From Schizochytrium sp. TIO01 (lineage: Eukaryota; Protista; Bigyra: Labyrinthulomycetes), in the NCBI GenBank assembly GCA_004764695.1, contig SMSO01000036.1, forward strand, positions 1,240,001-1,304,000: a stretch of 64,000 nt of DNA, in the 5' to 3' direction. A model generated the notes under the pieces. It was not told where the DNA came from. It saw only the letters and a program-made list of their open reading frames with translations, and ran no database searches. A program made the translations under genes and the position numbers. Of the stretch, positions 33,657-56,384 are shown piece after piece (within the stretch, counting starts at the first letter, position 1; every line of letters starts with the position of its first letter).

Positions 33657-34712
33657 TCACACAGGTTGCACTTGAGCAGCGTTTTCCTGAAAACTACTAG
33701 CGGAAGTACCAGTAGATGCGGCCTCGGTCATGTTACTGTTTTGATACTTCAATTTGTCTACAATCTGGCGAACTTTAGAACCACGTTTTTTACTGTTCAC
33801 ATGAGTTTGGCGTTTCCAAATGGCCATTGTAATACTTGCTGCCGCCACAAGATTGGCGATCACATCAAGGGGCGCTAGGGCCCAATCGACCATGTACAAA
33901 GTATATAAGTGTAGTCCTTTTGATTCATTTGCCTGCACTATTATGCGAACCGTCGTGACTATAGTCAGCAGGATAAACGAAGTGACAATTGTGAAAGTGC
34001 CCCAGAAAAAGTTCTTATGAGCAACTCGATACAGTTTGGCTGTACTATCTGCTGATGCTTGTCCAGACTTGCTCATTACACGTGCTTGTTCATAAAGGGG
34101 GTAAACAAAAAGCACGAGAAATGCAGCGCAGAGCGTTGAGTCAGTGATCGCAACAAGAATACTGAGCCACCAGGGAAACGTCTGCACACAGACACCATTC
34201 GGTAAGAGCTTTCCTCGCAAGACAATGAACACGAGTACATTTGAAAGCAGCATGCCATAAGAACCCGCCATAGTGAGTAGACGAAGATTGCGCATGATTC
34301 GAGATTTTCCTGTGTCTACGATCTTTGCGCGTTGTAGGAATATCAAATAATTTGATGCGTGGCCAAGTACATAAAATGGTGATGGCAACGAGCCAGCGAA
34401 TGAACACCATGGCCACATCTCAGGCTCTATCCTTATTACTGACAAGACGAATATGCCTAAAAGGCAACAGTTTGCAGAGATAACATGCACTAGAAGCAAC
34501 AAGAATGTTTTTTTTTGTGCCGGATTGCGGCGTACCTGACGGCTTTGTTTCAAAATATATAATAGCAGCGAGGAAGCATAAGCCAGACCTAAGCCTGACA
34601 ATACTGACTGAGTAACCCTGAAATTAGTAAATGAACTTGTCTCCTCAAAGTCATCGTCCACAAGTACGGTCGTTGCTTTGCTCCGTACGACATATTCGCT
34701 CCAAAAGCTCAT
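33657..34712 (-). CDS. 7-TM GPCR-like receptor, array copy 1 (subfamily A)
   Basis: 351 aa with seven hydrophobic segments. Motifs WPWC, HASNYLIFLQR, LLPNGVCVQTFPWW, D..LFVYPL, KNFFWG, DWALAPLDVIAN. Paralogous to the other 8 copies. Confidence 0.8.
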   Translation of the reverse strand: MSFWSEYVVRSKATTVLVDDDFEETSSFTNFRVTQSVLSGLGLAYASSLLLYILKQSRQVRRNPAQKKTFLLLLVHVISANCCLLGIFVLSVIRIEPEMWPWCSFAGSLPSPFYVLGHASNYLIFLQRAKIVDTGKSRIMRNLRLLTMAGSYGMLLSNVLVFIVLRGKLLPNGVCVQTFPWWLSILVAITDSTLCAAFLVLFVYPLYEQARVMSKSGQASADSTAKLYRVAHKNFFWGTFTIVTSFILLTIVTTVRIIVQANESKGLHLYTLYMVDWALAPLDVIANLVAAASITMAIWKRQTHVNSKKRGSKVRQIVDKLKYQNSNMTEAASTGTSASSFQENAAQVQPV

Positions 34713-36856
34713 TGTAAATTTCCATCCAAAAGAAGCTCAAGGTCAAGGAAAATATTCTTGTGGTCCGGTCTTCAAACCGAAGGAAGTAGAAGGTTTGTTC
34801 TACCATAATCTAACAAAGTCAAAATGTTCCAGTAATCACATAATGAATAAAAGTAGGCGGTCAGAAGTTACTGTTTCTTTCAAGTTACAATCCTTTTATA
34901 TCAATACTTTTTTCAGAACAACAACTGTTAAATGAGTTCAAGTTATTGCCGCCATGCTGCTTTTGTAGTATTGCTGGCTGCACTTGAATGTTCTTTTTTG
35001 CCTTTGTTATTCAATTAAATAAAATTATACGTGTAAATAGCCGTTGACTCGATCGTACTTTTTAACACCATGGTATGGGGAAGCCGCATTAGTTAGAGGA
35101 ACAGCCTATCGAGATTGGCTGCGTTTCTTATAAAGAAGAAAATCAATTCAACGGCTCATCCAAATCTGTACTTGCAATTTTGAATTCAGATGTCTTTGTA
35201 TTTGCCAACGCAATATTTAATCGTTTTTATAACTTACTTATGCGATGAATATATGTGCTGATTCACATGTCAATCTTGAGACGTGGGCTTTCAGTGTTCA
35301 TGAGATAGAGGAATTCGTGGTAGTTAACCCCGCCCAATATAGATAGCTAACAAGAAAGTAATCGATGTTGGTTCACCTCGTTTTGTAAACTAAGGAAAAT
35401 TGTGGACAATCTCATTTAATTGAATATGTTATGTTCCTACTATTTATTTGGGACCACCACCCAACCCTAGGATATTTGATGCCCTTCCAATGATTTAAAC
35501 TGCCTTTATTTGCGTATTTACAAAGTTTTGGTAAACTGCGTACTGTAGTTAGGGGCGTGTTGTTCTCAACAATTATTGCTATAATGTTAGTACAACTCTA
35601 AGTGTTGAAAGATGAAAATGCTTAGTTAGATGCTGGCTAAGAGGATGGTCACTTGGGAAGCTTGCCAAACTCTGGCCTTTAGTTTTTGAATGGATAACAT
35701 GATGTTTCTGAAGATGAATTCCAGGACAGGCTATAACTAGGATACTAGGTTCAGGCATACTTAACGAGGTTAGATTAATCTTTTTTTCAAGCATCATTTC
35801 ATACTTCACCATACTTAATTCCAGGGCAAATTTATTTCTACTTTCAAATCTTGGCTATCTCGAGTTCAAGACTATGGAACTGGCTGTCTAGTCCTGGTCC
35901 TACCGGCTCCTTGAGTGTTTACAATGAGACGCACATATGTCTTGTCCACAAATTTATCAGTTGGGGATCTCAGCACTGAGGTGTTCCTCGAAAAGCAATC
36001 AACTCTGTATCTGCACATTTTCACTTGTTCTTCCGAAGAATTGATCACATTAGATGGTTATATGAATTTTAGAAAAAGATATCTTCTGTTCCTACTGTTA
36101 AAAAAATAGATCGATTATACATGTCTAATTATTTTTTATTTCTAGAAAATTGACTTTGCTCCTTTCAATGAACTTGTTTTATTTGAACAGCTAGGTATGT
36201 ATGCCGAAAAATATCAATACTTATATCAAAGTTTAGGATACCATTATTGAGTGTCTCTCTACAAGAATTATACGTGTGAAGATCAACAATTCTAAGATGG
36301 TGAGAATCCTTGCTAATCCTGTATCTAACGAAAGGACGCTGGATTACACGTACATCAGTATGAAAGAAGTCTGGGTGACAGCGATCAATACCCAAAAATG
36401 TGTTTAACACACAAATATGATTGCTGGATATAATGCTACTAAAAGCCAAATCTAATGGTTAATTGTTTACATGCTCATCTTACTTGACCCATTAAATAAC
36501 ATATGTTATGACCAAACCTAGTAAGTCAAATCCTAAACACGAATCATATTCATATTAAGCTTTACATCCGTTCCAACGTCAGCAGATTGTTAATCTAATA
36601 AGCTAAATCTAAATAAGTTTTTGAAGTCTCTTGTATGTATCTTACTAGCAAGTGTCGGTGTTTCTTACATCAGGACAGACTGCAAAAAGGTCTTTGCATG
36701 GTGTTTTTTACCTATCAATGCTGCTCATGCGAAATCGCAAGTTCTTCTCTTCGAAAGAAAATGAATATTAAATTCGAGACTAGACGTATCAAAATCCCCG
36801 ATATAATCCTCGTATCCTCTTTGAATTATCTTCTTTCGCTTTAAATTTTAATTCTG

Positions 36857-37882
36857 CTAAACAGCATCGCTGGTGTTTGATTTCCCGGTAGACGGAAGAG
36901 ATTCCAAAGGTACAACAGCATGTTTCGCTGACTTTAAAGAATTTACGGTATTAGCACGTGGCAGTCTTCGATGTTTTGAAGGTTTCCAAATTACGATAGT
37001 AATGTTACAAGCTGCAATCGCATTAGCCATCAAGTCGAGGGGGCCTATCGTCCAGTCGACAAGATAGAATCCATAAACACGCTCACCAGACCGCTCGTGC
37101 ATTTCAGTCAAAACCCGGATTGTTGTTGTAAGAACTAAGAAGATGAATGAGGTCGCAATTGTGAAAGAGCCCCACTTCAAATTTTTAAGAGCTACTTCCT
37201 TCAGTTTTTTACTACTTTCCGAGGATACGTTTCCATATGCACTCATTTTATTAGCTTGCTGGACTAGAGGATAGATGAACATAATTAGAAAGGCTAAGCT
37301 CAATGCAGAGTCTGCAATCGCGATAAGGATACTCAACCACCAAGGAAATGTCTGCACGCAGACATTGTTTGGAAGCAGAATTCCACGGAGGATTACAAAC
37401 ATGAAGCAATTAAAAGCCAACATGAAATAAGTTCCTAGCGTTGTAAACAAACGTAGCGCATTCATCAAAGATGAGTTCCCCAACTCTATGATCTTTGAGC
37501 GTTCCAGGAAAATCATATAATTCGCTGCATGGGCTAGAACATAGAGCGTAGCTGGAAGCGAAGCTAAAAAGGAACACCATTGCCAAGAGTCCGCACTTAT
37601 TTTAATAAGAGAAAGCAAAAACATCAAAAAGCTGCATATTACAGCTGCACCAAGATGAAACAGAAGATATTTGAAGATTTTGCTTTGCTTATCATTTCGG
37701 TGTACATACCTACTACTTCGAAGGACATAAATCAATATGGTAAGGCATACGAGCAGTGTGATACAGCAAAAAGTAGATTGGACAACTCGAAAATTAGTAA
37801 ACGATGATGTTTCCACAAAACCATCATCAACAATAACAGTAGTGGTTCTGTTCCTTACAACATTAGTTTCCCAGAAACTCAT
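36857..37882 (-). CDS. 7-TM GPCR-like receptor, array copy 2 (subfamily A)
   Basis: 341 aa. WQWC, HAANYMIFLER, LLPNNVCVQTFPWW, KNLKWG, DWTIGPLDLMAN. Confidence 0.8.
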   Translation of the reverse strand: MSFWETNVVRNRTTTVIVDDGFVETSSFTNFRVVQSTFCCITLLVCLTILIYVLRSSRYVHRNDKQSKIFKYLLFHLGAAVICSFLMFLLSLIKISADSWQWCSFLASLPATLYVLAHAANYMIFLERSKIIELGNSSLMNALRLFTTLGTYFMLAFNCFMFVILRGILLPNNVCVQTFPWWLSILIAIADSALSLAFLIMFIYPLVQQANKMSAYGNVSSESSKKLKEVALKNLKWGSFTIATSFIFLVLTTTIRVLTEMHERSGERVYGFYLVDWTIGPLDLMANAIAACNITIVIWKPSKHRRLPRANTVNSLKSAKHAVVPLESLPSTGKSNTSDAV

Positions 37883-40040: not shown

Positions 40041-40996
40041 ATGAGCTTTTGGAGTGAATACGTCGAGCGAAGTGAAGCAACGACTGTAGTTGTAGACGAT
40101 AAGTATGAGGACACGCGCACATCCAATAAACTCAGACTTTCGCAGACAATAGTTTCTAGCTTATGCCTACTTATAACTACTCTGTATTTTATTTATATTT
40201 TACATCAAAGTCGCCAGGTTCGCCGAAAACCTACGCAGAGAACCATATTCAAGCTCTTCGTTGGACATGTACTTTCAGCAAGTGTTGCAAATTTAGTAAT
40301 TCTTGTATTATCAGTGGTTAATATAGAATCTGATGCGTGGCGGTGGTGCTCTTTCCTTGGTTCACTCCCCTCACCATGCTATGTATTAAGTCATGGATGC
40401 AATTATTTGATTTTTCTTAAGCGATCGAAGACGGTTTACACAGGATCATCAAGATTGATGCGCCTTTTCAATCTATTTACATTATTTGGTACTTATGGTA
40501 TGTTGTTCACAAATGCATGCGTGTTCATTCTTTTGCGAGGGTTGCTATTACCGAATAATGTTTGCGTACAGACGTTTCCCTGGTGGCTCAGCGTCCTTAT
40601 TTTAGCTGCAGACACGTCGCTCACCACCGTATTCCTCTTCCTTTTCATTTACCCCCTTCGTCAGCAAGCTCATGCTTTGCGCACGTGTGGCCAAGGAATA
40701 GCAGATAGTACGAAGCGGCCCGTAACAACTTCGTTTGGGGCACATTCTCAATTTCCACTTCGTTTTGTATGCTGTTGATTACTACAGTGGTTCGTTTTAT
40801 CATCGAAATAAATCAGGCGAACGATCATAAATATGTTCTGTTTATGCTTGAATGGAGCCTAGCCCCTATTGATGCACTTGCTAACATGATTGCAGCAGCC
40901 CAGATCACAAGGGGTATCTGGAAACCTAAATTTTCTTTACATAAAGATTCCAACAATACAACGTTGAAAACCGGATCAATTCACTATTCGAAGTAG
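40041..40996 (+). pseudogene. 7-TM GPCR-like receptor, array copy 3 (subfamily A), inverted and frameshifted by a ~13-nt deletion at ~40717/40718
   Basis: ORF 40041-40778 matches copies 1/2 up to ...ADSTKR. The family sequence ARNNFVWGTFSISTSFCMLLITTVVR...EWSLAPIDALAN resumes in another frame and ends at TAG 40994-40996. Confidence 0.85.
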
Positions 40997-42072
40997 TTTG
41001 ATCTTTTGAGGGCAAGTGCTGCAGCTACTGTAGGCAATGATACAGCTTAGCGTCATCAATAAACTCATCGAATGGAAACCATTAATCTTTTGCGGACTCT
41101 GTGAGTCTATTGCTAATTGAGACTTATTCGAACTGTTTTTTAGTTTTGGATTGTCTCTTCTTAGCTCTGTCTTAGAGTATGACTTTTGTAAACTAATCCA
41201 CCAACACAAATTCAGGTTGATAAACCTGAATTTGTACCTTAAAAGCTCTGTAATTATCCCCAAATAAATGGGTGAGGGTTCTTTTTGCTCATATGCTCTC
41301 CATAACGATGTGCGTGTCGCTTGTAATAGAATGATCGTCCAGAAGAAAAAATGAAAAGACAAATTATCGCGTGTCCGGTTTCATAGTACATATTTGTTCT
41401 TTTTATCGATTCGTCATCTTAAAACATAATACCTACTGAGAGTGGATTCATGATGTACTCCTTTAAATCAAATCCCCAAGTTCTCTTTAAAATAAGTCTT
41501 GCCAGTACCATAGCAACCTTTGTTTACATCATCGATTCATCCTTGTATTGCACATTATATTTGTATCTGCACTTCTCTAAGTGCTTATGTAGTGCATACT
41601 AATGTACTCCTACGATCACACTGCCAATAATTGTTAATGAGCTACTCTTATCAATCAAGAAGCCAAGTCAAAGTATATAGCACTCAAATTTGCTCCTCAT
41701 GAAACCGATCCTCAACGTTTTTCTTCTGTAATTAGATCAAAATCGAACCAACGAAGCCACTTCACCACAAATTTAAATTTTGGTTTCCAATTGAGATTGA
41801 CTTTTCTATCAGCAAAACTTGAGTCTCCTTCATGTTTGGGAGACATCTAACACGTCTTTCCTTTGAACGTGCCAGATATCCATATATCCATGGAAGAGAC
41901 ATAAAACGTAGACGTAGCTCAGTCATCAGATTCAGCAACACCCTTTGTGAGAATACATATCATAAGATTGTTGATTTAGTTACATGTATCCCCTCTTCCC
42001 ATTCCTTTCCGCTTTACGACCTCAAAAGTGAGCATATGGACATAAGATCTTACTTTTCTAATTAGGTTTGTC

Positions 42073-43119
42073 TTAAACTGGTGTTATAGCAACATGGCTC
42101 TTAAGAACCGACTCATTGACAGAGTCTAGCATTTTCTTAGTACCTGCTACAAGGGGTGAAACTGCTGAACTTCGCCTACTTGGATTACTTCCATTGCTCT
42201 TTAAACCATTATTAGTCTTTTGCTTTCGAGCCCACACGCTGGAGGTAATTTTCAATGCCGCGACCATGTTGGTTATGATATCGAATGGGCCCATTGCCCA
42301 ATCGACAAAATATAGGGAATAGTTCTCATTCTCAGAATGATTTTTTAGAGCGATTCGTACAGCGGTAATAACGATTAACGAAGCAAATGTGGTACATATT
42401 GTTAGTGCGCCCCATAATAAATTTTTTCTTGCTAATTTCAGTAAAGGATCGGAGGTTTTCGAGGTTGCTTTGATCTTACTCATTGATTCTGCCTGTTTCC
42501 ATACAGGATATACAAATAGGACAAGGAAAGCTGCAGATACAGATGCATCGCCAGCCATAAGAAGGACAGGAAGCCACCATGGAAATGTCTGTACACATAC
42601 TCCATTTGGGAGCAAAATTCCTCGAAGGATCACAAACATAATTGGAATTGAGCACAACATAGCAACGGTTCCTGCTGCAGCATACTGCCAAATATATCGT
42701 AATCGTTTGGAGTCAAGAGCGCCCGCAACTTGAGCTCGATGGAGAAAGATTAAATAACTGAATCCGTGCGATAAGACGTAAGTCGTGGCGGGGAGCGAAG
42801 CCAAAGCAGAGCACCAAGCCCATCCGTTTTCTGAAAACGTAACAACACCCAATACGCACATGGAAAATGTGCATGCAATCATGGCAAGGAGGTGCCCAAT
42901 CAGGAGTTTCAATATACGGCTTTGCGAGGGACTCCGCTTTTGGTTCTTGCTTCGCAATAGAACAAGAATAAACGCAGAAAGTCCTAATACAAATGCTGTT
43001 CCTGTTGTGATTGACTGCATTCTACGCATCTTTCGAAATCCTTCTGTGACGGTGAACCCAGGAATTTGCTTGACTGTTGTCTCACGACTACGTCGCACGA
43101 ACTCCTCAATGAACGACAT
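42073..43119 (-). CDS. 7-TM GPCR-like receptor, array copy 4 (subfamily A, divergent)
   Basis: 348 aa. WAWC, HGFSYLIFLHR, LLPNGVCVQTFPWW, KNLLWG, DWAMGPFDIITN. Confidence 0.8.
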   Translation of the reverse strand: MSFIEEFVRRSRETTVKQIPGFTVTEGFRKMRRMQSITTGTAFVLGLSAFILVLLRSKNQKRSPSQSRILKLLIGHLLAMIACTFSMCVLGVVTFSENGWAWCSALASLPATTYVLSHGFSYLIFLHRAQVAGALDSKRLRYIWQYAAAGTVAMLCSIPIMFVILRGILLPNGVCVQTFPWWLPVLLMAGDASVSAAFLVLFVYPVWKQAESMSKIKATSKTSDPLLKLARKNLLWGALTICTTFASLIVITAVRIALKNHSENENYSLYFVDWAMGPFDIITNMVAALKITSSVWARKQKTNNGLKSNGSNPSRRSSAVSPLVAGTKKMLDSVNESVLKSHVAITPV

Positions 43120-44338
43120 TCTGGTGCGGGCTTTGTCTTACTCACACGCAATAGACCATGATTATCAATAAGAAATAGGTTTGCTCGAAATTCGTTTTCC
43201 AATTTATGCATTAGAATTAGAGCGGTTCGATTGTCGCACACACCTCAGAACGGTCCCTTTATAAAATATTTAATAATAGGTATTGTCTAGTATTCTTTCA
43301 GCTGTTCAGGCGCTTCTCCTCACGTCCTATAACTCCGCGAGAATTCTTCCCTGCATAGATTCGGCCCAACAAGAGGCTAAGAGTTCAATGCATATATGCC
43401 CCTTTGTTTTCGTGTTGCCTATCGTATGAATTTCATCTCCATTCGTATGGAAGGAGGTGGGTAATTCCATGGCTACAAGTTTTTTATGTTAGAAAAAAAA
43501 ATTAAAAGAAAATTCAACCAGTCTTACTTATGCTAACAATTATTAACAAGTGTTCACAAAGAAGAAAATTAGGAAAGAGCTGTAGATTTTTCTATTGAGT
43601 ACGTACTGTCTTATGTCTGGCATTAACTGCACCCACATCTCCACTGGAATTATCTGGATAGCTTGATAAGAAGTCATAGTATATACTCTTACCAGATGGT
43701 ATCAAGTAGCCAAGAAATAAATATCAAAATACAGCATTTATTAAACTAGCTTCAACACAAGCATACATTCTGATTAGGAATCTATAAGACTTCAGTTTTA
43801 AACTAGTAATAGCACACGACATGAAGCATATGTTTCAGTATGTAAAATATTACAGTAGCTGGTTGTCATGATTCGTCAGTAAGAACCGAATTGGAAAAGG
43901 GGCTATTTCTGGCAGAATCGAATTGAGGAAATTGCAAAGTCAAGCTCCGAAATGCAGCTACTCTAATTTACCTGATCAGAAATCAAAACCTTATTATTCA
44001 CAGGAAGCTTCAGCAATTTTTCAGTCATGCATGTACCTGTCATACTCTCCTTTGATGTGATTTGCGTGGGTTTAAAGTTTATACCTAACCATCCGACAGG
44101 CAGTTCATAGATCACGATTCGGAACCTAATCAAGAGTAATGTGTAATGTTTCAAGAGCCACCAGAAGCTACATAGAAAATATAGCACAAAATTTTAGCAA
44201 GAATAATAAGTTTATATTTTAAGAGCCTGATTGCAAAAAAATGAGTCCCAAATTCTTGTCAAAATCTACTGGCATGCAACGTTCCTTTGTTGATCAAACA
44301 TCTAAAATGTGCAAGCACACTTTCAGATATAAGTGAGC

Positions 44339-45576: not shown

Positions 45577-45607
45577 AGAGAGAGCGAGAGAGAGAGAGAG
45601 AGAGAGA
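45577..45607. repeat. (AG)n microsatellite upstream of receptor copy 5
   Basis: Read directly; one interruption. Confidence 0.85.
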
Positions 45608-48600
45608 AATAACATAAAACAATTAATAAATTCTAATTTTAAATGGTTATTTATAAAATAAAGTGAACTAACTGTTTACATACTATCTTATTCCCATATC
45701 TGTTATTTAGCTTTTTGCTTTCTTCTTTTTAAAAGTAAAAGTTAGAAGAAAAAAACTATTAAAAAAATACTAATATTAAAAAAGATAAACCACTTTATTC
45801 ATTACTTATGTGAGAAATAAAATCATTGCTCTTTAAAAGTTGACGATCAACAGATTTGGTCCCATCACCCCAAACTATCACCCCCTCTATGTTCGTGCAT
45901 GTTCCAAGTAGCATGAGTAATAAGAGAACTGATAAGTAGAGAACAATGTCACTTTGCTAGTTCTTGTTTGTTGAACCAAACTGTGACCTAGTAAACTTGC
46001 CCACTCGTATTATTTGTCCTTAAAAGAAGCAATCGATAGGGGACGTGAAAGTCTCTGTGGGGAGCGGAGCAGGTGCATGATTAAACTCCGATGCTCTTGC
46101 GCAGTTCACTCTACCAGGTACAAATGTAACACAAAGACGGCCGAAGTTCTGCTCTATTTGGATCACTACTAGTCTCAAGGAAAGGACGCTACGAACTCCT
46201 GAAACAAAATAGGGAATGTTCCGTTGGGAAATGTGTAAATTTACGGCTAACAGAAGCAAGGTTTCTCTTAAATATTGTTGGCATCCATATGTATTATATT
46301 TCATTTTTAAAAAATAACTTTCGAAGTTTAAAAAAAAAAATTAACCTACAGGAGGGTATAAATATATTTAAAAGTTGACACCATCTGTTGGTAAGGGATA
46401 CGAGGTAAGTTTAGACTTTGGCTATATGCTAATTCCCGGTCTTGCATGGACAGTTGATCAATTGACCTGGCCAAGCTTGCCTTGAGAAAAGACGTTTGCT
46501 GGTTGAAAAGTCAAACAGAGACTTCAGATCTGTGCTGCGCAACTTGACAGATGCGCTAGCACATGGTTCTTGCATGTTCTTGTAATGTCTCTATATGTCG
46601 ATGAATTATATTTTAAAATCTGTAAGCCCTTCAGATCGAAACATCAGGAATGGAGGATCAACTAATTGATACTTTTATTGAATAGATATCGCGTGCCATG
46701 ACCGTACATTGAAAAGATGATAATATGGAGCGATAGATAAGCTTCATTCTCGATATGACATTGTATCGATAGAAGGTCAATGTAAATTATTTAAATATTT
46801 CTGTCAAACTATTGTATGATTGAAAAATGGTCATAAAGTCATTTTATTATAGCACATTATTGCATACAAAAGTCGAGTAAGCCTCTATATGCACCATCTA
46901 CTGCTCTAATGCACCTTTTCATTCTCGCCATGATGTCATCTGTCAGCTTCAGAAAATTTAAGCGAACTCGGCATAGGAGAATAATTCTTAACCTTAGGTA
47001 TTCTCTGTTCGATCCATTTAAAACAGCTGATTTTTTTTGTTATAGACTAGCTGCTGATTTTAACAGTAATGATTGCATAATCTTGATAGAGTGCGTTTGT
47101 AACTATTAATCATTAGTTCACAGCAAATCGAGTTCGAAATAGACCATACTATTCATGCGCTGGAAGAGTGTTATTGCGAAAAATCTAGCAGGTAACTATA
47201 AACTCGTTTTGATGACTTCAAATAGCTAGTATATTCGAAAGACCGCAAATTGGTGGTACTTTAGTTCAAAACATGACTTGTACCTTTGCAAAACAGAATT
47301 TTTAAAATTACATACGGGATTAGTATCCAGTCAAATTTATCTCTAATGTAAGATCAAACAGTATCAAAAGTCTGAAAAGTGACTTATACAGACTTAAAGA
47401 ACTTGGGGAGCGGTACAAGAGAGTGTTGGCCGTTTTAGTAGGTTTTGCAAGTAGCGCAGCGGCTTAGAACCTAAACAAAGCTTGACTCATTCGCACGAAT
47501 ACACGCAGATAAATAAGAACAAACACCTCAAGCTATATCAGCAGGATATTACATCCATTTTCAAGATGTTTTGTGGGTCCAAAACTCGTGAAATTCATGT
47601 GTATGCTTCGAAATATGATCAAGAACTCGTCCGTCATATTGAAATTAGGCATCTTACCAAATAATCTCAATCATGTCGTGCTCTGAATACAGAGCATTTT
47701 TGATAAACTCTTATGACAACTTTTAAAGTCAATTTTCTTTTAGATTTTTCGCAAAGGGCTTTATCAGAGACATACATCTGTTCAGTTTTACTGAAAATCG
47801 CAAATCTTTACCAATTATATTTTGGCTTTGATTGTATGGTTGGGTATTCTCTTCTTCTTTATTTCTTTTGATCTGCCCGATGCTGATCTCTGAGACGGCT
47901 CGCTTAACTTGACAATAAAACACAAGGCAAGTGCACCTCAAAGCTGTTCAGGGGTTCTGCACGCGGGAAAGCTGTCGAGCTCGGGTGCAGCCAAGACGGA
48001 GCAATCCAGGAATAGCTGACTGCATTGAGCTCGACTCTCTCAATGAGACTCTACGTTTCTTATCTGGAGATCATGGGTCTTGTGGCACTCTCATATCCTA
48101 TTCTATCTGGGTGAAAGAAAGGTCATTCTAGCGCCCAAGATGCTGCAATTGGCAACTACGAATCTTTCAATACTGACGATCCGTCGCTTTCCTCAGTAAG
48201 TTCAGTACTCCTGGTCTTTTCCTCTGTTGTCTTTAGCGATGAGGCTAGCAGCATGAACATGCAGACCAAAAGTAAACAAATCAATTTCCTTGAACCTCAC
48301 TCTCGCATGTGATTATAGCTTTCCCATAAATTTTATAAATTGAAGCTCCTGGAGTAGATTACAAGATTGAATTCCACCTTTCGGGTTTCTTCCTTTTTCA
48401 AAGAAAAGTATTCATATCTTTGGGCTCATGTTCCTATTATATTGTATTGCTCTCATGTATATAGGTCAATCCTAGTGTAATGAATCCTAGAAGCAGAAAT
48501 GTAAGGCTGCATGTTTATATTTTATTTCAAGAAAAAAAGACTTCAGTTCTTGGACTGAAGCTCCACTGTATAATTGCAAAAGAAATTAATAAATTCTCTG

Positions 48601-48743
48601 TAAATCCATAAGCTTTGTTTCACGCTGAGCTACAATTAGCATTACGTGCGAGTGCACTTATTAAGTGGAATAACTTAGACATTGTTCTCTAATAAATAAT
48701 ACAACAGTATACCATTAAATCACCCTTCATCCATTCATTCGTA

Positions 48744-49769
48744 TCACGATTGGAACTCTGCGAGATTATCACTCCGTCTAATATTATTGTTTGTGTATGA
48801 CCTGGATAACATCTTGATACTTCGAACTAAAGAATCGGTCATCTTAGTTCGGGGAACAACAGAACTGGATGAAGCTTTCCATACTGGTTGTGTAAGTTTC
48901 AGTGCTGCCAGCAAATTTGCGGAAGTTTCAAATGGACCCAAACTCCAATCTAACATATATATAGCCCCATTATGACTCTTACTCAATTCAAGGATGGTTC
49001 TTGCAACCATCACTATCGACATAAAGACGAGCGTTGTACACAAAGACAACGACCCCCACAAGAAATTTCGCCGAGCGATACGCATTAACCTTTTGCTACT
49101 TTGTGCTGTTGCTGTATGCTCAGAGAGAAACTTAGCTTCTTTTCGGAGCGGTCCAATAAAATGAATTAGGAAGGATGTACCGAGAAGAAATTCAACCATA
49201 AGAACAACTATGCTGCCCCACCAGGGATATGTATGAGTACAGACCCCATTGGGTAGCAGAATCCCGCGGAGTAGAATATAATTTCCGCCAACACTAATGA
49301 GAGTAATGTAGGTGCATATTCTAGCAATGTATAGAGATATATCCATAGCTCTCGAAGTATTTATGTTCTTTGTGACTAAATTCGACCTTTGCAGAAATAT
49401 TAAATTAGAAAATGCGTGTGATGAAATGTACAGGGTACCAGGCATCGACCCAAGGAATGAGCACCATCGCCAGTTTTCCGTTTCAATAGTTACCATACCG
49501 AGAAGCATCATGAAGAAATTAGAAGAAGTATTTGCGATGATGTGTATTAGTAGCAGTTTAAAAAGATACTGCTGGGTAGAAGTTCTCCGCACAAAGCGAC
49601 TGTGATACACGACATAGAGCAGAGCTATAATGCTCCACAAAAAAGCCATACACCCAGCAACCGCCTGCACTTTTCTTAGATGATAAAATGATACAGACGC
49701 GACGAAGCCATCATTATCAATCACAGTTGAGGATTGGCTTCTTCTAATCACTCGGTCGTAAAAGCTCAT
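48744..49769 (-). CDS. 7-TM GPCR-like receptor, array copy 6 (subfamily B)
   Basis: 341 aa. WRWC, HAFSNLIFLQR, LLPNGVCTHTYPWW, RNFLWG, DWSLGPFETSAN. Confidence 0.8.
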   Translation of the reverse strand: MSFYDRVIRRSQSSTVIDNDGFVASVSFYHLRKVQAVAGCMAFLWSIIALLYVVYHSRFVRRTSTQQYLFKLLLIHIIANTSSNFFMMLLGMVTIETENWRWCSFLGSMPGTLYISSHAFSNLIFLQRSNLVTKNINTSRAMDISLYIARICTYITLISVGGNYILLRGILLPNGVCTHTYPWWGSIVVLMVEFLLGTSFLIHFIGPLRKEAKFLSEHTATAQSSKRLMRIARRNFLWGSLSLCTTLVFMSIVMVARTILELSKSHNGAIYMLDWSLGPFETSANLLAALKLTQPVWKASSSSVVPRTKMTDSLVRSIKMLSRSYTNNNIRRSDNLAEFQS

Positions 49770-50569
49770 TGGTCAACTAGATCATATTATGCCAGTGCGG
49801 TTAGGCAAAGCGTTGCCTTCCTCATTCAACTAACCTAGGTTTGCGAGGGTTCTAAATGTGCTCGAGCCCAGGTCTTGATTGGGTAATTAATCCGACCATG
49901 CCTTGCAAGGTCAGTTTCTCAGCTCTGTGATGTGGGGGCGAGTGTAGAAACTACTAGCACAACAAGAAGAGATCCGTTGGATTGAACCTGTTATATTCCA
50001 AAAATAACTCAAAGAATGACCTCTTTAACAGACGACAGAAGTTGTAGTGTCAAGTTGATCCTTAGATTTAATGCATTTTACTCTCCGATGTGCCCAATTT
50101 TAAAACTACAAACTACAAACTGCAAGCTGTAAAAAAAACTTCAAACCTGAATTAAGCCCATTATAGGCGTTTTCTTGTGAAGGCGAATACCACAAACGCT
50201 TAAGATAATTACTATACAGCTCCTAGTATAGTGAACAAAATTGTTTGAAAGGAGATCCCTTTGAGCACAAATAAATAGAAAACCTCAGTTATAATACCGA
50301 CTATCTTTTTTGGACTTTGAGAAAATATCCAAGATCTGCACTAGAGGCCGTTCCACGCAGGTTCACACCAAACGCTTCAACACATAATTGCAAATGAGGT
50401 TTCAGCAAGTGATATTTATATTATGTACTCTCGCGAGGTGATCAAGGAAAACCAATTACAACTCAACAAAAAGGTTAATCTATTTTGAACTTGAACTAAG
50501 AAGATTGAAATAATAGTTGATAACTCAATATACATTGGAGGAAAAACACCGTTCCTGAATAAATCTATA

Positions 50570-51736
50570 TTACTGAATAGCCTTGATAGAGGGTGCCCTA
50601 GAAGTTAATAGCGAACTAGATTTTTTAATTGATTGACCAGACCTAATTTGCGATGGTCCTGACAATGCTCTTGCGGTTGATTGCCGATTCGGTTGCCAAT
50701 TCAAACTTGATGGAAGCTGGGAAGATCTACGCAAGTCATTGTTTGTATTGCTTCTTGGGAAGAAGCTTAAACGTTGCAATACATGGTGATTCTCGCTGCT
50801 GCTGCTTTTATAACCGCGAGATAAAATCTTATTATTTCTTCTCCAGACAGGAGCTGTAAGTTGTAGCGCTGCTAACAAATTAGCCGATGTTTCGATAGGT
50901 CCAAACGCCCAATCTAACATATAAACTGCATATACCTCATCATTGTTTGTCTCGAGTACAATTCTTGCAATAATTACTATCCAAATAAAGCAAAATGTGG
51001 TTGCCAATGAAATAGAACCCCAGTACAGGTTCTTTTTTGCAATCTTCATAAGCTTTAAACTGCTTTCGGCAGTCGCTGCATGTTCAGAGAGAAATTTTGC
51101 TTGTGCTCGAACGGGCTCAACAAAAAGAATCAAAAATGCTGTGGCAAGTGACAGGTCACCAACTAAAACCACAATAGCGGCCCACCATGGATAAGTGTGT
51201 GTGCAGACATTATTTGGAAGTAGCATGCCGCGAAGAAATACATAGCATGCTCCAACCACTAGAAGCATAGCATACGTTCCAAACGTAGTAATTCTAAGAG
51301 TGTTTCTCAATGTTATTGAACCTTGCATATTCTTGGTCACTACCTTCGATCTTTGTAGAAAGATTAAATTTGAAAATGCATGTGAAGTCACGTAAGCTGG
51401 TCCTGGCATTGAACCTAGAAAGGAGCATAGCTGCCAATGTTTCGGATATATATAGACTGTGCCCAGAAGCATCATATGAAAGTTTGAAATAATATTTGCT
51501 GCAACATGTGCCAGTAGAAGCTTAAATAAGTAGCTTTGTGCCGGAGTTCTCTTCACATGCTGACTTTGGAACAAGACGTATGCTAATGCAAGAAGTCCAA
51601 GAACAAACGCAAGTGTTCCACCGGCCGCTTGCATTGCTCTTAAGCTCACGAAAGCTTCTGTTTCAACAAAACCATCATCAACCAAGACTGTAGTTTCTTT
51701 TGATCTCTTTATGACGGAATTAAAATAATTGCCCAT
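50570..51736 (-). CDS. 7-TM GPCR-like receptor, array copy 7 (subfamily B, long Ser-rich tail)
   Basis: 388 aa. WQLC, HAFSNLIFLQR, LLPNNVCTHTYPWW, KNLYWG, DWAFGPIETSAN. Confidence 0.8.
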   Translation of the reverse strand: MGNYFNSVIKRSKETTVLVDDGFVETEAFVSLRAMQAAGGTLAFVLGLLALAYVLFQSQHVKRTPAQSYLFKLLLAHVAANIISNFHMMLLGTVYIYPKHWQLCSFLGSMPGPAYVTSHAFSNLIFLQRSKVVTKNMQGSITLRNTLRITTFGTYAMLLVVGACYVFLRGMLLPNNVCTHTYPWWAAIVVLVGDLSLATAFLILFVEPVRAQAKFLSEHAATAESSLKLMKIAKKNLYWGSISLATTFCFIWIVIIARIVLETNNDEVYAVYMLDWAFGPIETSANLLAALQLTAPVWRRNNKILSRGYKSSSSENHHVLQRLSFFPRSNTNNDLRRSSQLPSSLNWQPNRQSTARALSGPSQIRSGQSIKKSSSLLTSRAPSIKAIQ

Positions 51737-53183
51737 TTGTCTTTCGAAATATTGATTGTACTACACAAAACGCATTTAGGCAAACTGGATCAGGTCTCGC
51801 AAGCAATGGGTGCCTCAGGCGTACTGTTTCTGGTTCGCAGTAGTTTGCAAATGTAAATGTATGTGAAGTGGAAGACTGCCACTAATACCTGGCAGAAGTA
51901 CGTGTTAGATAGGGCAAGTGCCCAACCTATGCTCTATACTTTGAACTGTGACCATTTCAATTCTGCATTCGTTCCTTGTCAGGCATTCCAGACAGTGCCA
52001 AGCTACCAAGTTATATTACCTTAGTTCCTAAATATATCAGATGGTCAACAAGTAGAAAGGAAGCACATTGCACCTTTACTGTAAGGGTATGTAATAAAAA
52101 ATAATGTTACTGTTGAGCTTGATTCTCACATTCACTTGAAGCACACTAAGAACAATTTTCGTGTTATTTTGTTTTTGGTTGTTTCACGTACTGAGGTAAC
52201 TTATGAGCCAAACTGGCCGGGTTGAACGGAGTTGTGTCTCTATTCGGTACCGCTTGAACCGTGTCGAGATTTGCAGTATATAGATATAGACCGGGGAGAA
52301 CTTCGTACTTCTTCATGATTTTGTCCGTTGAAATCTCCTCACGGAAGAAGTGCTTCATTAATTCCATGGAATAGACATTTGTTAGGAAGGAAGCTTTTCG
52401 AAGATCAGCATGTAATGATCACATGAAGAGTATTGTGAACTGTGTATTCAGCAAATGAAGTAATGTCCTTATTTTCATCACTCTTGGTATATAGGCCTGC
52501 TTCTCGTTTTTCTTTTCTTTTTCAATAGAGTAAAAACTTTTCATGAAAATATAGTTAGAAGTTATATAAGGAATTATTATTAAAAGTTTGGGGGACATGT
52601 GACGATCTATTGCTTAGTCTAAGAGGGCTCTTGCTGCACTAGTATAATTAAATGCATACATCATGACCAGGGAACGCATAGCTATCTAAACTCTGTTTGT
52701 CCCATGTCGTAAAAAAATCATGTCATCTTGCCCACAAATTTTATCTGATAAAGTACTTCTCATGAATAGAACCTCTGAAAGTGAATGATGTGATTGATAC
52801 ATGAAACAAGACCATGGTTTGGACACATTGGCTTTACTAAATCATACAAAGGTAGACTAGTCTTTATCTTATTCTCAATTGAAATCTTGAAATGTAGATA
52901 GAAACTACTACGAAACGTGCATAGACAGAATATCTCAAGATTCATCAACTTTGCAATTTAAAGCGTGTCAGGAGCCTTCACACAGAGAAAACAATAAATA
53001 AACTTAGTAACTGTGGCAGGATATTCACAAATGCACGGATCATACCATACCAAATAGACTCAGACTCAGTTTATATGCCTAGGCTGAAAAACTGAAATGA
53101 CGACACTAAATAAGCGTCATTTCAAGAATATCAAGATTTGTGGTGTATATCAAGACTGGTAGATTCGTCCTGAAATACCATTG

Positions 53184-54260
53184 TTATGAGCCTATCGATG
53201 CGGAACCGCGAATCACCGTACTTAGTTTTCGAGGTTCATTCTCATTTTTGGCAGCAGAGCTATGATGAGCTAGAGAGCTTCGAACAAAGTTGTAATTACT
53301 TTTGGTTGCATAGCTTCCACTACGACTCTGAGTCGAACGGGGCAGAAGTTTATGATATTGCCTTTTCCAAACTGGTGCGGTTAAATTTAATGCAGCCACA
53401 AGATTGGCAGTTGTTTCAAGCGGACCGAATGCCCAGTCTAGCATGTAAACTGCATAGACTCCGCCACTTGAGTTTAGTGCGAGGGTTATCCTTGCTAATA
53501 TCACTATCATCGTGAAACAAAAGGTTGTTCCTAGAGAAAATGAACCCCAGCGTAAGTTTTTGCGGGCAACATTCATGAGCTTCATGCTACTATCAGCCAT
53601 TGCTGCATGCTCTGAGAGAAACTTGGCCTGCTGTCGCAAAGGCTCCACAAAGAGGATAAGAAAGGCAAGCGATAGAGATAAATCCGTGATCAAGACAATT
53701 ATTGCACCCCACCATGGGTAGGTATGTGTACAGACTCCATTAGGAAGCAGCTTTCCACGAAGGAAAACATAAATTGCTCCAGCAACAAACAACATGATAT
53801 ATGTGCCCATTGTGGCGAGTTTCAAAGTGATATCCATAATCTTTGAGGTATGCATATTTTTTGTAACTATCCGAGATCTTTGCAGGAAAATTAAATTTGA
53901 GAAAGCGTGTGATGTGACGTAAATTGGACCTGGCATGGACCCCAGGAAAGAGCATAACCTCCAATGATCAGGATCTATTTGTATAGTGCCAAGAAGCATC
54001 ATGTGAAAATTAGATACAATGTTTGCTGACACGTGCAGAATTAGCAGTTTGTATAGAAGGTTTTGAGTAGAAGTTCGCTTCACAAAGCGACCTTGGTAAA
54101 CCACAAGGACCATGGCACTAACCCCAGCCAAGAAGGCAAGCATTCCCCCAACTGCTTGCATTTTCCGCAGCAAGAGAAAAGCTGTGTTTTCCACGAAATA
54201 TTCATCTTCAACGACAGTTGTTTCTCGCGATCGTTTGACAACAGTCTGATAAAAGTCCAT
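53184..54260 (-). CDS. 7-TM GPCR-like receptor, array copy 8 (subfamily B)
   Basis: Start placed at ATG 54260 (MDFYQTVVKRSRETTV) by alignment with the paralog N-termini; 358 aa. WRLC, HAFSNLIFLQR, LLPNGVCTHTYPWW, DWAFGPLETTAN. Confidence 0.8.
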   Translation of the reverse strand: MDFYQTVVKRSRETTVVEDEYFVENTAFLLLRKMQAVGGMLAFLAGVSAMVLVVYQGRFVKRTSTQNLLYKLLILHVSANIVSNFHMMLLGTIQIDPDHWRLCSFLGSMPGPIYVTSHAFSNLIFLQRSRIVTKNMHTSKIMDITLKLATMGTYIMLFVAGAIYVFLRGKLLPNGVCTHTYPWWGAIIVLITDLSLSLAFLILFVEPLRQQAKFLSEHAAMADSSMKLMNVARKNLRWGSFSLGTTFCFTMIVILARITLALNSSGGVYAVYMLDWAFGPLETTANLVAALNLTAPVWKRQYHKLLPRSTQSRSGSYATKSNYNFVRSSLAHHSSAAKNENEPRKLSTVIRGSASIGS

Positions 54261-55298
54261 TGCACCTTGACCGAATCGCTTACTCTTTTGACTATGCAAC
54301 TATTTTGCATACTCCGAAGCTTCGCTCAACATGCGCTGTTATGACTCTCACGCACCCGGAGAAGGTAGAGATGATTCGCAAATGTTCACTAGTCCTGGAA
54401 CTTGGTTTCACAAGATGGTTTACACTTGCTGGAATGTTTGTCAAAGAACTACCTAATGTGAACTCTTAACTCAAAGCTACGATCTCTTAACTTTGTTGAG
54501 TTTGATCTGGTTTAAATTATGCCAAAAAAAATTGATTTACTATAGATTGTATTTTAATTTTTTAATTATATTTTTAATTTTTTCAATCATTCCGTTGGAC
54601 TTTTTGTCTTGAATCAGGGTTCAGATACGAACTTGACAAGAGTACTATGTTCCACATAGCGAACATTGAGGGGAGTGTGTATTGGAACATTACCTACTGG
54701 TAAATAGTGTGTATATACCTTTAAACCATGTGGGGAGCCGAAGTGAATAGGTTGTAGTGTCATCGTATATTGTATAAGGAAGTTTAATTGGATCAGACAG
54801 AAAGTAATTTGGATGTTTACGCCCTTGATTAAAAAACAAAAGTAAAAAAAGCATATATGATGTGAGATCTGAAAGGAAGAATAGCATCCACGGGTCCATG
54901 ATTTGTGTCTAGCTTCTTTATGCACTTAACCAAGCGCACGCTGAATTTTGTTATTGCAATGGTGAATATTTAAAGGCACGAAGTTGAAGCAACTTAGAAT
55001 TTAACGAAGACTGTGGCGTAGCTAAAGGTTTTGGGATCTATTAACGATATCCCATCTGAATCAAAACAAAATTTATGTTGTCAAAATCACCACTGGGTCC
55101 AGCTTAAAGCATTTATTGCATAATTGTCAGAGGTACTATTTTTCAAGTTTTAATAAGAGTAACTATTCGATGTGAAAATGTATCTCGTATAAAGTTTAAT
55201 ATATATAACCAAAGAGCCTCATGCTGTGTCATGCTTTGAATCCCACTCATTATAAACATGGCATTTCCTGCTCAGGAGTTGTCGAAGCTGTAGACGGT

Positions 55299-56384
55299 TT
55301 AATCAGCGGTACTCTGAGTTTTCCGGGAAGAATTGAATGTTGAAGTTACGGGAGCAGAAGGTAGAGCTGCTGATTGAGCATACCGCAATGAGATTCTGGA
55401 TTTGGAATAGGATCCATGATAAGTTCCATTCGGACCAAGGGCGGGGTTGATGATATTGCTGCGATATTTTAAAACAGAAATGTATGGTTGCTTCCATACT
55501 GGGCTTGTTAATTTTAAAGCGGCCAGAAGATTTGCTGAAGTTTCGAAAGGTGCAAATGACCAGTCAAGCATGTAAACTGCATATGATCTTTCATCTTGGA
55601 GCTCTAACACCATTCTTGCAACGATAACAATCATAATAAAGCAAAAGGTTGTGCAAAGAGAAAATCCACCCCAGCGGAGGTTCTTATAAGCAATCCGCAT
55701 AAGTTTCTCACTACTCTCTTTAGTAGCTTTATGTTCCGAAAGAAATTTTGCCTGTGCTCGTACAGGAGCAACAAAAACAACGAGGAACGCTGCTCCCAAA
55801 GACAAGTCAGCTATAAGAACTATAATTGCTCCCCACCAGGGATAGGTGTGGGTGCAGACATTGTTTGGCAGAAGCTCTCCTCGAAGGAAAAAGAAAATTA
55901 TACAAAGTACAACGAGAATTGCATATGTACCAATCGTTGCGAGATATAGCGTGACTTTTAGGCCTTTAGACATCAACATGTTCTTCGTGACAATTTTTGA
56001 TCTCTGTAGAAAGATCAAGTTCGAAAATGCGTGCGAAGCAATGTATGCTGGTCCTGCAATAGAACCCAACACAGAGCATAATGCCCATGCACTGGGTGAA
56101 ATGTTTATGTGTCCAAGGAGCATCATATGGAAATTGCATAAAATGTTGCAAGTAATATGCAGAAGCAAAAGTCTGAAGAGGTATTCTTGTGTCGCACTCC
56201 TTTTGACAAAGCGACTATGTAATATAACATAACATAAGGCTAGAACTCCAAACGTAAGGGAGAAAACTCCACCGATTGCTTGCATTTGTCTGAGCTTCAG
56301 AAAAGCATTTGTTTCTTTGAAATTAGGATCATCTAGTACCGTAGTTTCCCGAGTTCGCTTGACGACCGTCTCCCAGAACTCCAT
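55299..56384 (-). CDS. 7-TM GPCR-like receptor, array copy 9 (subfamily B)
   Basis: 361 aa. WALC, HAFSNLIFLQR, LLPNNVCTHTYPWW, KNLRWG, DWSFAPFETSAN. Confidence 0.8.
   Translation of the reverse strand: MEFWETVVKRTRETTVLDDPNFKETNAFLKLRQMQAIGGVFSLTFGVLALCYVILHSRFVKRSATQEYLFRLLLLHITCNILCNFHMMLLGHINISPSAWALCSVLGSIAGPAYIASHAFSNLIFLQRSKIVTKNMLMSKGLKVTLYLATIGTYAILVVLCIIFFFLRGELLPNNVCTHTYPWWGAIIVLIADLSLGAAFLVVFVAPVRAQAKFLSEHKATKESSEKLMRIAYKNLRWGGFSLCTTFCFIMIVIVARMVLELQDERSYAVYMLDWSFAPFETSANLLAALKLTSPVWKQPYISVLKYRSNIINPALGPNGTYHGSYSKSRISLRYAQSAALPSAPVTSTFNSSRKTQSTAD

Follow-up and report, generated by a model that had tools for sequence, protein, structure and literature searches.

An abundance of G-alpha subunits and class C receptors has been described for thraustochytrid genomes (PMC6050695), and the class C expansion shares several properties with the gene family reported here, being large, partly tandem and intronless and standing beside an expanded G-alpha set. 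However, the class C members are 800-1300 aa long, carry big outer sensor domains and match 7tm_3 strongly, whereas the proteins of the present family consist of a bare seven-helix domain of approximately 340 aa without a 7tm_3 match.

A second point of reference is provided by RSF, GPRch1, GPRch2 and GPRch3, new protist GPCR families that were discovered through clustering and structure prediction (Garcia De Las Bayonas and King, eLife 2025; PMC12716839). Like our family, these are orphan seven-helix proteins of unicellular eukaryotes that lack both additional domains and a Pfam model. We set the family beside them by their published descriptions. On this basis an identity with RSF is disfavoured, since ECL3 is short in our model (approximately 4 residues) and the RSF motif is absent from the paralog alignment. 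According to the same study, GPRch1 is related to GPCR-PIPK, while GPRch3 reportedly has no counterpart among known GPCR families, even at the level of structure. The defining feature of GPRch2 is its exceptionally large ICL3, and outside holozoans this family was found only in green algae; it was also reported from ichthyosporeans, where our family has members as well.

Nine paralogous genes within 23 kb

The window (the whole stretch of 64,000 nucleotides of thraustochytrid DNA that was analysed) contains nine paralogous ORFs between 33.6 and 56.4 kb, at the places given by a first-pass annotation of this DNA. Eight are intact (338-388 aa) and one has a single frameshift:

33657-34712, minus strand: paralog 1, intact ORF of 351 aa (family profile E 7e-151), grouping with paralogs 2 and 3 in the tree
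36857-37882, minus strand: paralog 2, intact ORF of 341 aa (family profile E 2.5e-148)
40041-41023, plus strand: paralog 3, ORF of 245 aa (40041-40778) ending in a frameshift, the rest readable in another frame to approximately 41023
42073-43119, minus strand: paralog 4, intact ORF of 348 aa (family profile E 1.5e-139)
44339-45355, minus strand: paralog 5, intact ORF of 338 aa (family profile E 1.3e-145), grouping with paralogs 6-9
48744-49769, minus strand: paralog 6, intact ORF of 341 aa, the copy used for the AlphaFold model
50570-51736, minus strand: paralog 7, intact ORF of 388 aa
53184-54260, minus strand: paralog 8, intact ORF of 358 aa with the top family score (E 2e-165)
55299-56384, minus strand: paralog 9, intact ORF of 361 aa (family profile E 8e-161)

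The open frame of paralog 8 extends to a TTG at 54299, but the ATG at 54260 is the likeliest start. Paralog 3, the sole copy on the plus strand (family profile matches L009 and L022), is closest to paralog 1 (pS 0.60, dN/dS approximately 0.26), and we take it for either a young pseudogene or a gene with a truncated product; the same truncated ORF is present in a public assembly (P0004). A tblastn search of the window with 25 family proteins returned exactly nine intervals and no additional family fragments. Between the paralogs we found no further ORF of at least 150 aa, in line with the earlier claim that no other intact gene intervenes, although this search covers uninterrupted frames and spliced genes are possible in the gaps.

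Full-length pairwise identities among the array paralogs are 33-55%, far beyond chance. All nine copies fall into a single clade (support 94/95) whose sub-clades track physical order; judged from the sequences, the array arose by tandem duplication. Values of pN are 0.27-0.49 compared to pS values of 0.60-0.85, which are saturated, and by these estimates the copies are old and under purifying selection.

Evidence for transcription comes from sequencing runs whose RNA nature is the guess of the tool used. For paralog 6, a transcript-like contig of 1371 nt (48503-49860) from an RNA-like run comprises the gene and short flanks only, and for paralog 7, contigs of 1395 and 1446 nt (50505-51950) were obtained from two RNA-like runs, with no intergenic cover. 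Paralog 8 is represented merely by small fragments. Contigs from the three RNA-like runs end at gene ends, whereas the coverage of a DNA run is even throughout, at approximately 30x. Paralogs 6 and 7 appear to be transcribed and are probably unspliced.

A predicted GPCR fold with an outer N-terminus

The AlphaFold model of paralog 6 (pLDDT 86.5, pTM 0.82) has seven helices, with a beta-hairpin in ECL2 (residues 168-180) and a short helix 8 (residues 294-297). The best 50 PDB matches in Foldseek are all class A GPCRs, with E approximately 1e-4. In VIA, an independent structural search run all-against-representatives, HCAR1 is the best match (Z 18.1, rmsd 3.5 over 244 residues), and the first 34 rows hold nothing but GPCRs, nearly all of class A, and designed folds of the GPCR type. 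The best class A structural matches comprise HCAR1/HCAR2, OXGR1, the thromboxane A2 receptor, GPR55, P2Y receptors and rhodopsin, with Z of 16-18 over approximately 245-265 aligned residues and identities of only 6-13% (VIA) or 8-18% (Foldseek). The best natural non-GPCR in VIA is the microbial rhodopsin KR2, a sodium pump, with Z 15.4, approximately 2.7 below the best GPCR; this is a modest margin for helical bundles, which get Z of approximately 14 through arrangement alone.

With jumping-spider rhodopsin (Z 17.2), bovine rhodopsin (Z 16.7) and KR2 among the matches, the proteins might be read as retinal-binding light sensors, either opsin-like or microbial-rhodopsin-like. We consider this extremely improbable, as the rhodopsin matches are level with those of dozens of non-opsin GPCRs and TM7 has no conserved Lys across the paralogs. 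The only Lys near the inner end of TM7, K291 of the modelled copy, is N, S or Q in other array copies, and an opsin or microbial rhodopsin identity is disfavoured because the retinal-binding Lys is not conserved.

The net charges of the N-terminus (-2.1), ICL1 (+2.4), ICL3 (+4.6) and tail (+4.6) follow the positive-inside rule, and an N-terminal N-x-[ST] sequon is present in 15 of 25 paralogs, in 9 of those at aligned residues 11-14; paralog 2 has an N-terminal N-x-T sequon at residue 11. Loop charges and sequons support an N-out/C-in topology, and both invariant cysteines would therefore be on the outer side. In the model, Cys103 is located at the top of TM3 and Cys177 in the ECL2 hairpin, which is the placement that a predicted TM3-ECL2 disulfide (Cys103-Cys177) calls for, and the [RK] residue lies at the inner end of TM3.

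Seven-helix bundles recur among unrelated families, so a transporter, channel or enzyme, for example of a PAQR-like or insect-odorant-receptor-like type with inverted topology, also has to be weighed. However, no such fold is found among the best matches in either Foldseek or VIA, the N-out loop charges are the reverse of those in insect odorant receptors and PAQR proteins, and weak Pfam matches to transporter-like families are single and inconsistent, making this alternative very unlikely. As far as the model goes, the GPCR-like reading holds for fold and topology. The first-pass annotation had predicted a 7-TM, N-out protein with its two cysteines on one side of the membrane and a GPCR rather than a transporter or enzyme fold, and it is borne out on each of these points.

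A family outside the named GPCR classes

The fold resemblance to class A extends to several landmarks: seven helices, an outer N-terminus, a TM3-top Cys paired with a Cys of the ECL2 hairpin (predicted in our case), a basic residue where TM3 reaches the cytoplasm, and a C-terminal part made up of a short helix 8 and a tail rich in Ser and Thr. By contrast, D2.50, CWxP and NPxxY are absent from the paralog alignment, with TM2 lacking an Asp and TM6 lacking W-x-P. Of E/DRY, only the Arg/Lys is retained (79/80 sequences), and TM7 carries [DE]...N. Unlike class A receptors, the family has motifs of its own: F..P and [KR]N..W[GS] mark the inner ends of TM5 and TM6, respectively, and [DE]...N lies within TM7.

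Profile searches place the family apart as well. Among 25 paralogs and 72 distant relatives, Pfam gave nothing consistent even at E 10, and 7tm_1 (PF00001) had no match at all at that threshold; a whole-genome search with 7tm_1 matched only loci outside the family. Likewise, class C (PF00003) and the cAMP-receptor type (PF05462) had no match in protein scans and gave only other loci in genome searches. The best match in a PDB profile search had an E of only 1.5. With hhalign, the family aligned to a small alignment of thraustochytrid class A receptors with 56.6% probability over 178 columns, and to a class C control with 70.5% probability over 113 columns, confined to TM1-TM3. Since the value between class A and class C is 1.5%, the GPCR profile signal of the family is weak and not specific for a class. 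In the weak class A alignment, Cys103, Arg128 and Cys177 are in register with class A landmarks. By these searches the family is not part of any named GPCR family, and the earlier remark that it was not recognised as any of them is upheld.

Conserved residues on both faces of the bundle

Every motif listed in the first-pass annotation was recovered. All nine array copies share, without exception, W..C at the top of TM3, LLPN[GN]VC in the TM4-5 loop and IFL.R. For [KR]N..WG in TM6 and DW...P.[DE]...N in TM7, the same is true of the eight intact copies, which are the only ones scored because the frameshifted ORF stops before TM6. The C-terminal tails contain 20-28% Ser+Thr and 12-18% Lys+Arg, compared to only 2-7% Asp+Glu, and are indeed basic and Ser/Thr-rich as had been described. 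In an alignment of 80 family sequences from several lineages, the signature positions are Cys103, Cys177 and [RK]128 (79/80 each), Phe204 (80/80), Pro207 (76/80), Asn235 (74/80) and [DE]281 (74/80).

Across these 80 relatives, the cytoplasmic halves of the helices are more conserved than the outer halves (2.71 versus 3.16 bits; Mann-Whitney p 5e-6), which is the expected pattern for receptors that have a common transducer and differ in their ligands. Within the array, the most conserved segment is the outer ECL2 cap (0.39 bits), and the variable parts are TM1, TM4 and the outer half of TM6. The conserved cap is easier to reconcile with a ligand common to all copies, or with a built-in plug, than with an odorant repertoire that has diversified.

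This bears on the proposal that the locus has the organisation of animal olfactory and taste receptor clusters. The tandem single-exon seven-helix genes, the one broken copy and the clades in physical order do correspond to such clusters. Slow turnover and the cap being the most conserved segment speak against the likeness, as an odorant repertoire with rapid birth and death of genes would look different. Single-exon genes look common in this genome, given that uninterrupted frames are found for all matches to G-alpha and to the class C 7TM domain as well as for the flanking genes in the window; moreover, unlike in animal olfactory clusters, the duplicates are ancient (saturated pS), only 1/9 is broken and the outer cap is conserved. 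For these reasons, we regard the likeness as a weak analogy.

Family distribution and G-protein setting

Profile searches detected at least 30 family members in the genome, arranged in several tandem clusters. The array clade itself has no relatives outside the species in the databases, and to that extent the description of the genes as lineage-specific is correct. It does not apply to the wider family, which also occurs in other labyrinthulomycetes, two ichthyosporeans and one chytrid, all of these proteins being unnamed. The same genome has at least 13 full-length G-alpha genes, more than 40 RGS-domain matches and 3 G-gamma genes, together with at least 37 class C receptors and only 2 class A receptors and 1 cAMP-type receptor. 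Among the seven-helix sets counted in the genome, the family is the second largest.

Several orphan seven-helix families act without G-protein signalling, and a common fold alone proves no function. The array proteins could have a GPCR fold and yet serve, capped and constitutively folded, as a scaffold, as a trafficking or lipid-handling factor, or as a receptor using another route. This would agree with the absence of the classical class A activation motifs and with the N-terminal segment and ECL2 cap being the most conserved part of the array. On the other hand, the residues conserved across the wide family are on the cytoplasmic face and include the basic residue that ends TM3, the tails pair a basic character with a high Ser/Thr content, and the genome combines many G-alpha and RGS genes with few canonical receptors beyond class C. 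On balance, we consider an action without G proteins unlikely, though it deserves to be taken seriously. A predicted complex with one of the at least 13 G-alpha subunits scored 0.32, compared to a mark of 0.34 and 0.31 for one control.

We somewhat favour the view that the array is a branch, expanded by local duplication, of an unnamed eukaryotic GPCR-fold family and that its nine genes encode G-protein-activating cell-surface receptors. The short, acidic and often glycosylatable N-terminus would be extracellular, and a disulfide would link the top of TM3 to the ECL2 beta-hairpin. The conserved N-terminal segment probably joins this hairpin to cap the outer face, a proposal based on conservation and the secondary structure of the model. 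The conserved residues are concentrated on the cytoplasmic side: [RK] and F..P at the ends of TM3 and TM5, respectively, the Asn at the start of TM6, [DE]...N of TM7 and a Trp of helix 8, with the basic Ser/Thr-rich tail following. A ligand in the outer half of the bundle would move TM5-TM7, this shift would activate one of the many heterotrimeric G proteins of the organism, and phosphorylation of the tail would turn the receptor off. Localisation to the plasma membrane, binding of a ligand, coupling to G proteins and a possible part in chemotaxis are inferred; for an organism with so many G proteins, the array proteins make good candidate sensors.

Implications

Thraustochytrids are abundant marine decomposers and industrial producers of DHA. 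In this genome the family contributes at least 30 bare seven-helix candidates for receptors, which are invisible to domain-based surveys because no Pfam model exists. Its compact signature (two Cys, [RK] at the end of TM3, F..P in TM5, Asn in TM6 and [DE]...N in TM7) would allow profile building and family searches across eukaryotes, and its occurrence in ichthyosporeans and a chytrid bears on the number of receptor classes in early eukaryotes. Since Aurantiochytrium is transformable, deleting the 23-kb array would be a practical way to study chemotaxis or nutrient sensing.

Thraustochytrid zoospores are chemotactic (Fan et al. 2002, as cited in PMC12221091). It is conceivable, but in our estimation quite doubtful, that the family represents an ancient unnamed GPCR class common to stramenopiles (labyrinthulomycetes) and opisthokonts (ichthyosporeans and chytrids), and a main input to the expanded G-alpha set of thraustochytrids. 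If this were true, the conserved N-terminus and ECL2 cap would suggest membrane-entering, lipid-like ligands or a built-in agonist, and the array would provide the first candidate receptors for zoospore chemotaxis in thraustochytrids.

An array of nine intronless paralogs

ORF calling on the source assembly (64 Mb in 37 contigs) revealed nine paralogous open frames between 33.6 and 56.4 kb of the window, numbered here in physical order. Eight copies are intact, lie on the minus strand and encode proteins of 338 to 388 amino acids. The copies referred to by position are as follows.

33657-34712, minus strand: paralog 1, intact
40041-40778, plus strand: paralog 3, which ends after 245 amino acids, with its last third in another frame to approximately 41023
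48744-49769, minus strand: paralog 6, intact, the copy used for structure prediction
50570-51736, minus strand: paralog 7, intact
53184-54260, minus strand: paralog 8, intact
55299-56384, minus strand: paralog 9, intact

Since the missing third of paralog 3 is readable in another frame, a single frameshift separates its two parts; we translated this copy frame by frame and kept the pieces unjoined. The identical truncated ORF is present in a public assembly (P0004). A tblastn search of the window with 25 family proteins matched these nine intervals and no others. The intergenic gaps of 0.8 to 3.4 kb (35% to 38% G+C) have no ORF of 150 or more amino acids, and a repeat search for conserved intergenic elements in the array returned repeats within coding regions only. 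The first-pass annotation of this DNA had described nine paralogs with a shared set of motifs, and every motif that it named is found in the copies, together with basic, Ser/Thr-rich tails.

The flanking genes are ordinary and encode an IQ-motif protein, Noc2, an ArfGAP, a DHHC palmitoyltransferase, an ABC transporter, a cyclin and an MFS sugar transporter. GC3 is 0.34 to 0.43 in the array genes, compared to 0.40 to 0.59 in the neighbouring housekeeping genes, and overall G+C is also lower in the array genes. The array lies within a block of approximately 34 kb (window 26000-60000) with 35% to 43% G+C versus 44% to 52% in the flanks, for which low expression, a different replication or chromatin domain, and age are possible causes.

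Separately, a 59-nt stretch between paralogs 6 and 7 (window 50329-50387) recurs with 100% identity at no fewer than 40 genomic sites (104 candidates at first look). The copy that was checked (locus L060) falls within a large-subunit rRNA gene, and many of the copies are close to contig ends. Sequencing depth over the stretch spikes up to 25,000 in the three RNA-like public runs described below and to approximately 1,800 in a DNA run. In appearance, the stretch is an insertion of a short rDNA fragment into the spacer.

The encoded proteins have seven predicted helices and a predicted GPCR-like fold

An AlphaFold model of paralog 6, with an alignment of 25 paralogs as input (pLDDT 86.5, pTM 0.82), has seven long helices, with a beta-hairpin (residues 168-180) between helices 4 and 5, cytoplasmic extensions of TM5 and TM6, a short helix beyond TM7 and a disordered tail. 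Loop charges obey the positive-inside rule for an N-out/C-in topology, and the N-terminal segment of 15 of the 25 paralogs carries an N-x-[ST] sequon, which in 9 of those falls on aligned residues 11-14. Both invariant cysteines are on the outer side, one at the top of TM3 (Cys103) and one in the ECL2 hairpin (Cys177). The seven-helix, N-out topology and the placement of the two cysteines on one face of the membrane, both proposed beforehand, are supported.

Searching the PDB with Foldseek, the best 50 hits were exclusively class A GPCRs (E approximately 1e-4, TM-scores 0.4 to 0.55). A second structural search, independent of Foldseek, gave HCAR1 at Z 18.1 (rmsd 3.5 Å over 244 residues) and dozens of GPCRs at Z 15 to 17, with the class D receptor Ste2 at 16.3 and the first microbial rhodopsin at 15.4. 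Re-examination of the best 1000 Foldseek chains left this picture unchanged, and no receptor sub-family stands out. Given that helical bundles may score Z 14 without kinship, the fold match taken alone is good, not overwhelming; both searches agree with the earlier expectation of a GPCR-like fold rather than that of a transporter or enzyme.

Residues 1-25 of each protein (e.g., 49695-49769 on the minus strand) are strongly conserved among the paralogs from the initiator Met onwards, with the consensus M-S-F-W-E-x-x-V-x-R-x-x-x-T-T-V-x-x-D-D-x-F-x-E-T and a pLDDT of 85 to 90 in the model. Receptors do not usually have so conserved an N-terminus, which suggests that it acts structurally or in a ligand-like manner in the outer cap that this segment probably forms with ECL2.

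The family appears separate from named receptor classes

Pfam scans of the nine array proteins, the 25 paralogs and 72 distant relatives, at E-values up to 10, gave no consistent match. DUF3169, Orbi_NS3, VTT_dom and other stray single matches were rejected, as all were below their own cut-offs and inconsistent. When run against the whole genome, the 7tm_1, Dicty_CAR and 7tm_3 profiles matched only loci other than this family. A family profile searched against all PDB sequences hit CX3CR1 only, at a non-significant E-value of 1.5, in an alignment that places Cys103 and Arg128 on class A landmarks. In the family alignment none of the class A switches D2.50, CWxP and NPxxY is present, and only the basic residue of E/DRY is retained. 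TM7 has no conserved Lys, making an opsin-type function unlikely.

Profile comparison with hhalign against individual receptors of this genome, of class A and of the cAMP type, was uninformative (probability approximately 1%). Against a thraustochytrid class A alignment, the probability was 56.6% over 178 columns, with Cys103, Arg128 and Cys177 in register, but the control, an alignment of this genome's class C receptors, scored higher (70.5% over 113 columns), while class A versus class C gave 1.5%. The sequence signal is therefore weak and selects no class, and a reading of the 56.6% score in favour of class A was rejected in view of the class C control. We treat the array genes as a separate GPCR-fold family outside class A.

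The nearest ESM Atlas clusters are an unnamed eukaryotic cluster (0.93), a 'serpentine receptor class gamma' cluster (0.92) and fungal DUF7703 clusters (0.87 to 0.90, and below 0.9 in a named-only search); all Atlas neighbours share at most 166 of 256 features and serve as leads only. DUF7703 (PF24802) appeared in none of the Pfam scans. A literature search found no paper describing the family. A recent catalogue of protist GPCRs named six new families (PMC12716839), and the array family may correspond to its GPRch2 or GPRch3, both of which were compared on their published descriptions. Another of its families, RSF, does not correspond, as its TM6-TM7 loop contains an additional helix and a motif. 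In agreement with the initial failure to recognise any named family, which the Pfam, PDB-profile and class-specific searches uphold, the array genes constitute a seven-helix family with a GPCR fold, its own motif set and no name.

Relatives in other organisms and a cytoplasmic signature

Among 1.84 billion representative proteins, the array profile matched 125 at E of 0.001 or below. Most of the top 15 are 94% to 100% identical to paralogs of this genome, indicating that they are from the same species. Named sources outside the species are Hondaea fermentalgiana (the source of the closest named match to a family member), Aplanochytrium, the ichthyosporeans Pirum gemmata and Abeoforma whisleri, and the chytrid Batrachochytrium salamandrivorans; all these proteins are annotated as hypothetical. 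The Pirum and Abeoforma members may already have been placed in GPRch2 or another cluster of PMC12716839. Another protein search with a family profile, subject to a word-index limit, returned same-species proteins only.

Signature residues in an alignment of 80 family sequences
Cys103 (top of TM3): 79/80
[RK]128 (end of TM3): 79/80
Gly169 (ECL2): 64/80
Cys177 (ECL2 hairpin): 79/80
Phe204: 80/80
Pro207: 76/80
Asn235: 74/80
[DE]281: 74/80
Asn285: 60/80

Except for the disulfide cysteines and Gly169, the signature residues are in the cytoplasmic halves of the helices. Across all helices, the inner halves (2.71 bits) are more conserved than the outer halves (3.16 bits; p = 5e-6). Such a pattern would be expected if the receptors shared a transducer and differed in ligand.

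Old duplications retained by selection

The genome has at least 32 family matches, approximately 25 of which are full-length single ORFs, and further tandem groups are located as follows.

Contig C35, 1349-1355 kb
Contig C33, 3345-3352 kb
Contig C34, 1671-1678 kb
Contig C13, 5944-5954 kb

Maximum-likelihood analysis places the nine window copies in a single clade (support 94/95) with sub-clades that follow physical order (copies 1-3; copies 5-9, 100/100), and every other tandem cluster likewise groups as a separate clade. Orthologs from other species exist for some of the paralog lineages outside the array; for the array clade, the databases gave none. Between copies, pS is 0.73 to 0.85 and saturated in almost all pairs (0.60 in the youngest pair), with pN at 0.26 to 0.49. 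Saturated pS together with lower pN indicates that the duplications are old and the copies retained by purifying selection. Within the array, conservation is highest in ECL2 (0.39 bits), followed by the inner halves of TM3 and TM5, and TM7; TM1, TM4, the outer half of TM6, ECL3, ICL2 and the tail are the most variable.

All G-alpha and class C matches, as well as the flanking genes, have uninterrupted frames, so that single-exon genes appear to be common in this genome. This, together with the slow turnover and the conserved outer cap, weakens the proposal that the array has converged on the organisation of animal olfactory receptor clusters.

At least two copies appear to be transcribed

Three public runs from the same organism each yield contigs totalling approximately 37 Mb, versus approximately 64 Mb for DNA runs; they are RNA-like by a tool's guess rather than on record. 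They contain 32% to 42% of the words of window 48500-54400. Their contigs on this stretch, at 48503-49860 (1371 nt) and 50505-51950 (1395 and 1446 nt), comprise gene plus short flanks, are gapless inside and leave the intergenic DNA uncovered, whereas a DNA run covers the entire stretch evenly at approximately 30x. The third gene of the stretch (paralog 8, 53184-54260) has small RNA-like fragments only. We read these data, with the RNA nature of the runs being guessed, as transcription of at least two array copies into unspliced mRNAs of approximately 1.4 kb. Small contigs from these runs also occur between paralogs 7 and 8, at 52674-52894 and 51924-52116, outside ORFs of 90 or more amino acids; possible sources are a long 5' leader of paralog 7, a small transcript that is unannotated, and stray DNA reads.

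Signalling context and candidate function

Enrichment of G-alpha and class C domains in thraustochytrids has been noted earlier (PMC6050695). The signalling complement of this genome is as follows.

G-protein signalling genes in the genome
Full-length G-alpha genes: at least 13
RGS-domain matches: more than 40
G-gamma genes: 3
Class C receptors: at least 37
Class A receptors: 2
cAMP-type receptors: 1

Four of the full-length G-alpha genes are within 26 kb on contig C30 (1577709-1603772; L032 and L033), forming another tandem cluster. The short contig C8 (834-1880) carries a G-alpha copy that scores the same as C30:1602726; duplication or an assembly repeat may account for it. The genome has just two confident class A (7tm_1) genes, arranged head to head, approximately 2 kb apart, on contig C31 (8838361-8841883; L035 and L036). 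Among named proteins, the closest to them comes from Hondaea and carries the annotation of a pyroglutamylated RFamide peptide receptor. A class A receptor of the genome shares 46% identity with a Hondaea protein, which, like the closest named match of the array family, fits a thraustochytrid.

We infer that the 30 or more bare seven-helix proteins would be a natural candidate partner for the G proteins of this genome. Complex prediction with receptor residues 1-305 and the G-alpha protein C30:1602726 speaks neither for nor against coupling. Chemoreception during zoospore chemotaxis, as suggested in the first-pass annotation, is a plausible candidate function. Orphan GPCR-like families keep emerging in protists, and the array family is one more of these rather than a new kind of system.
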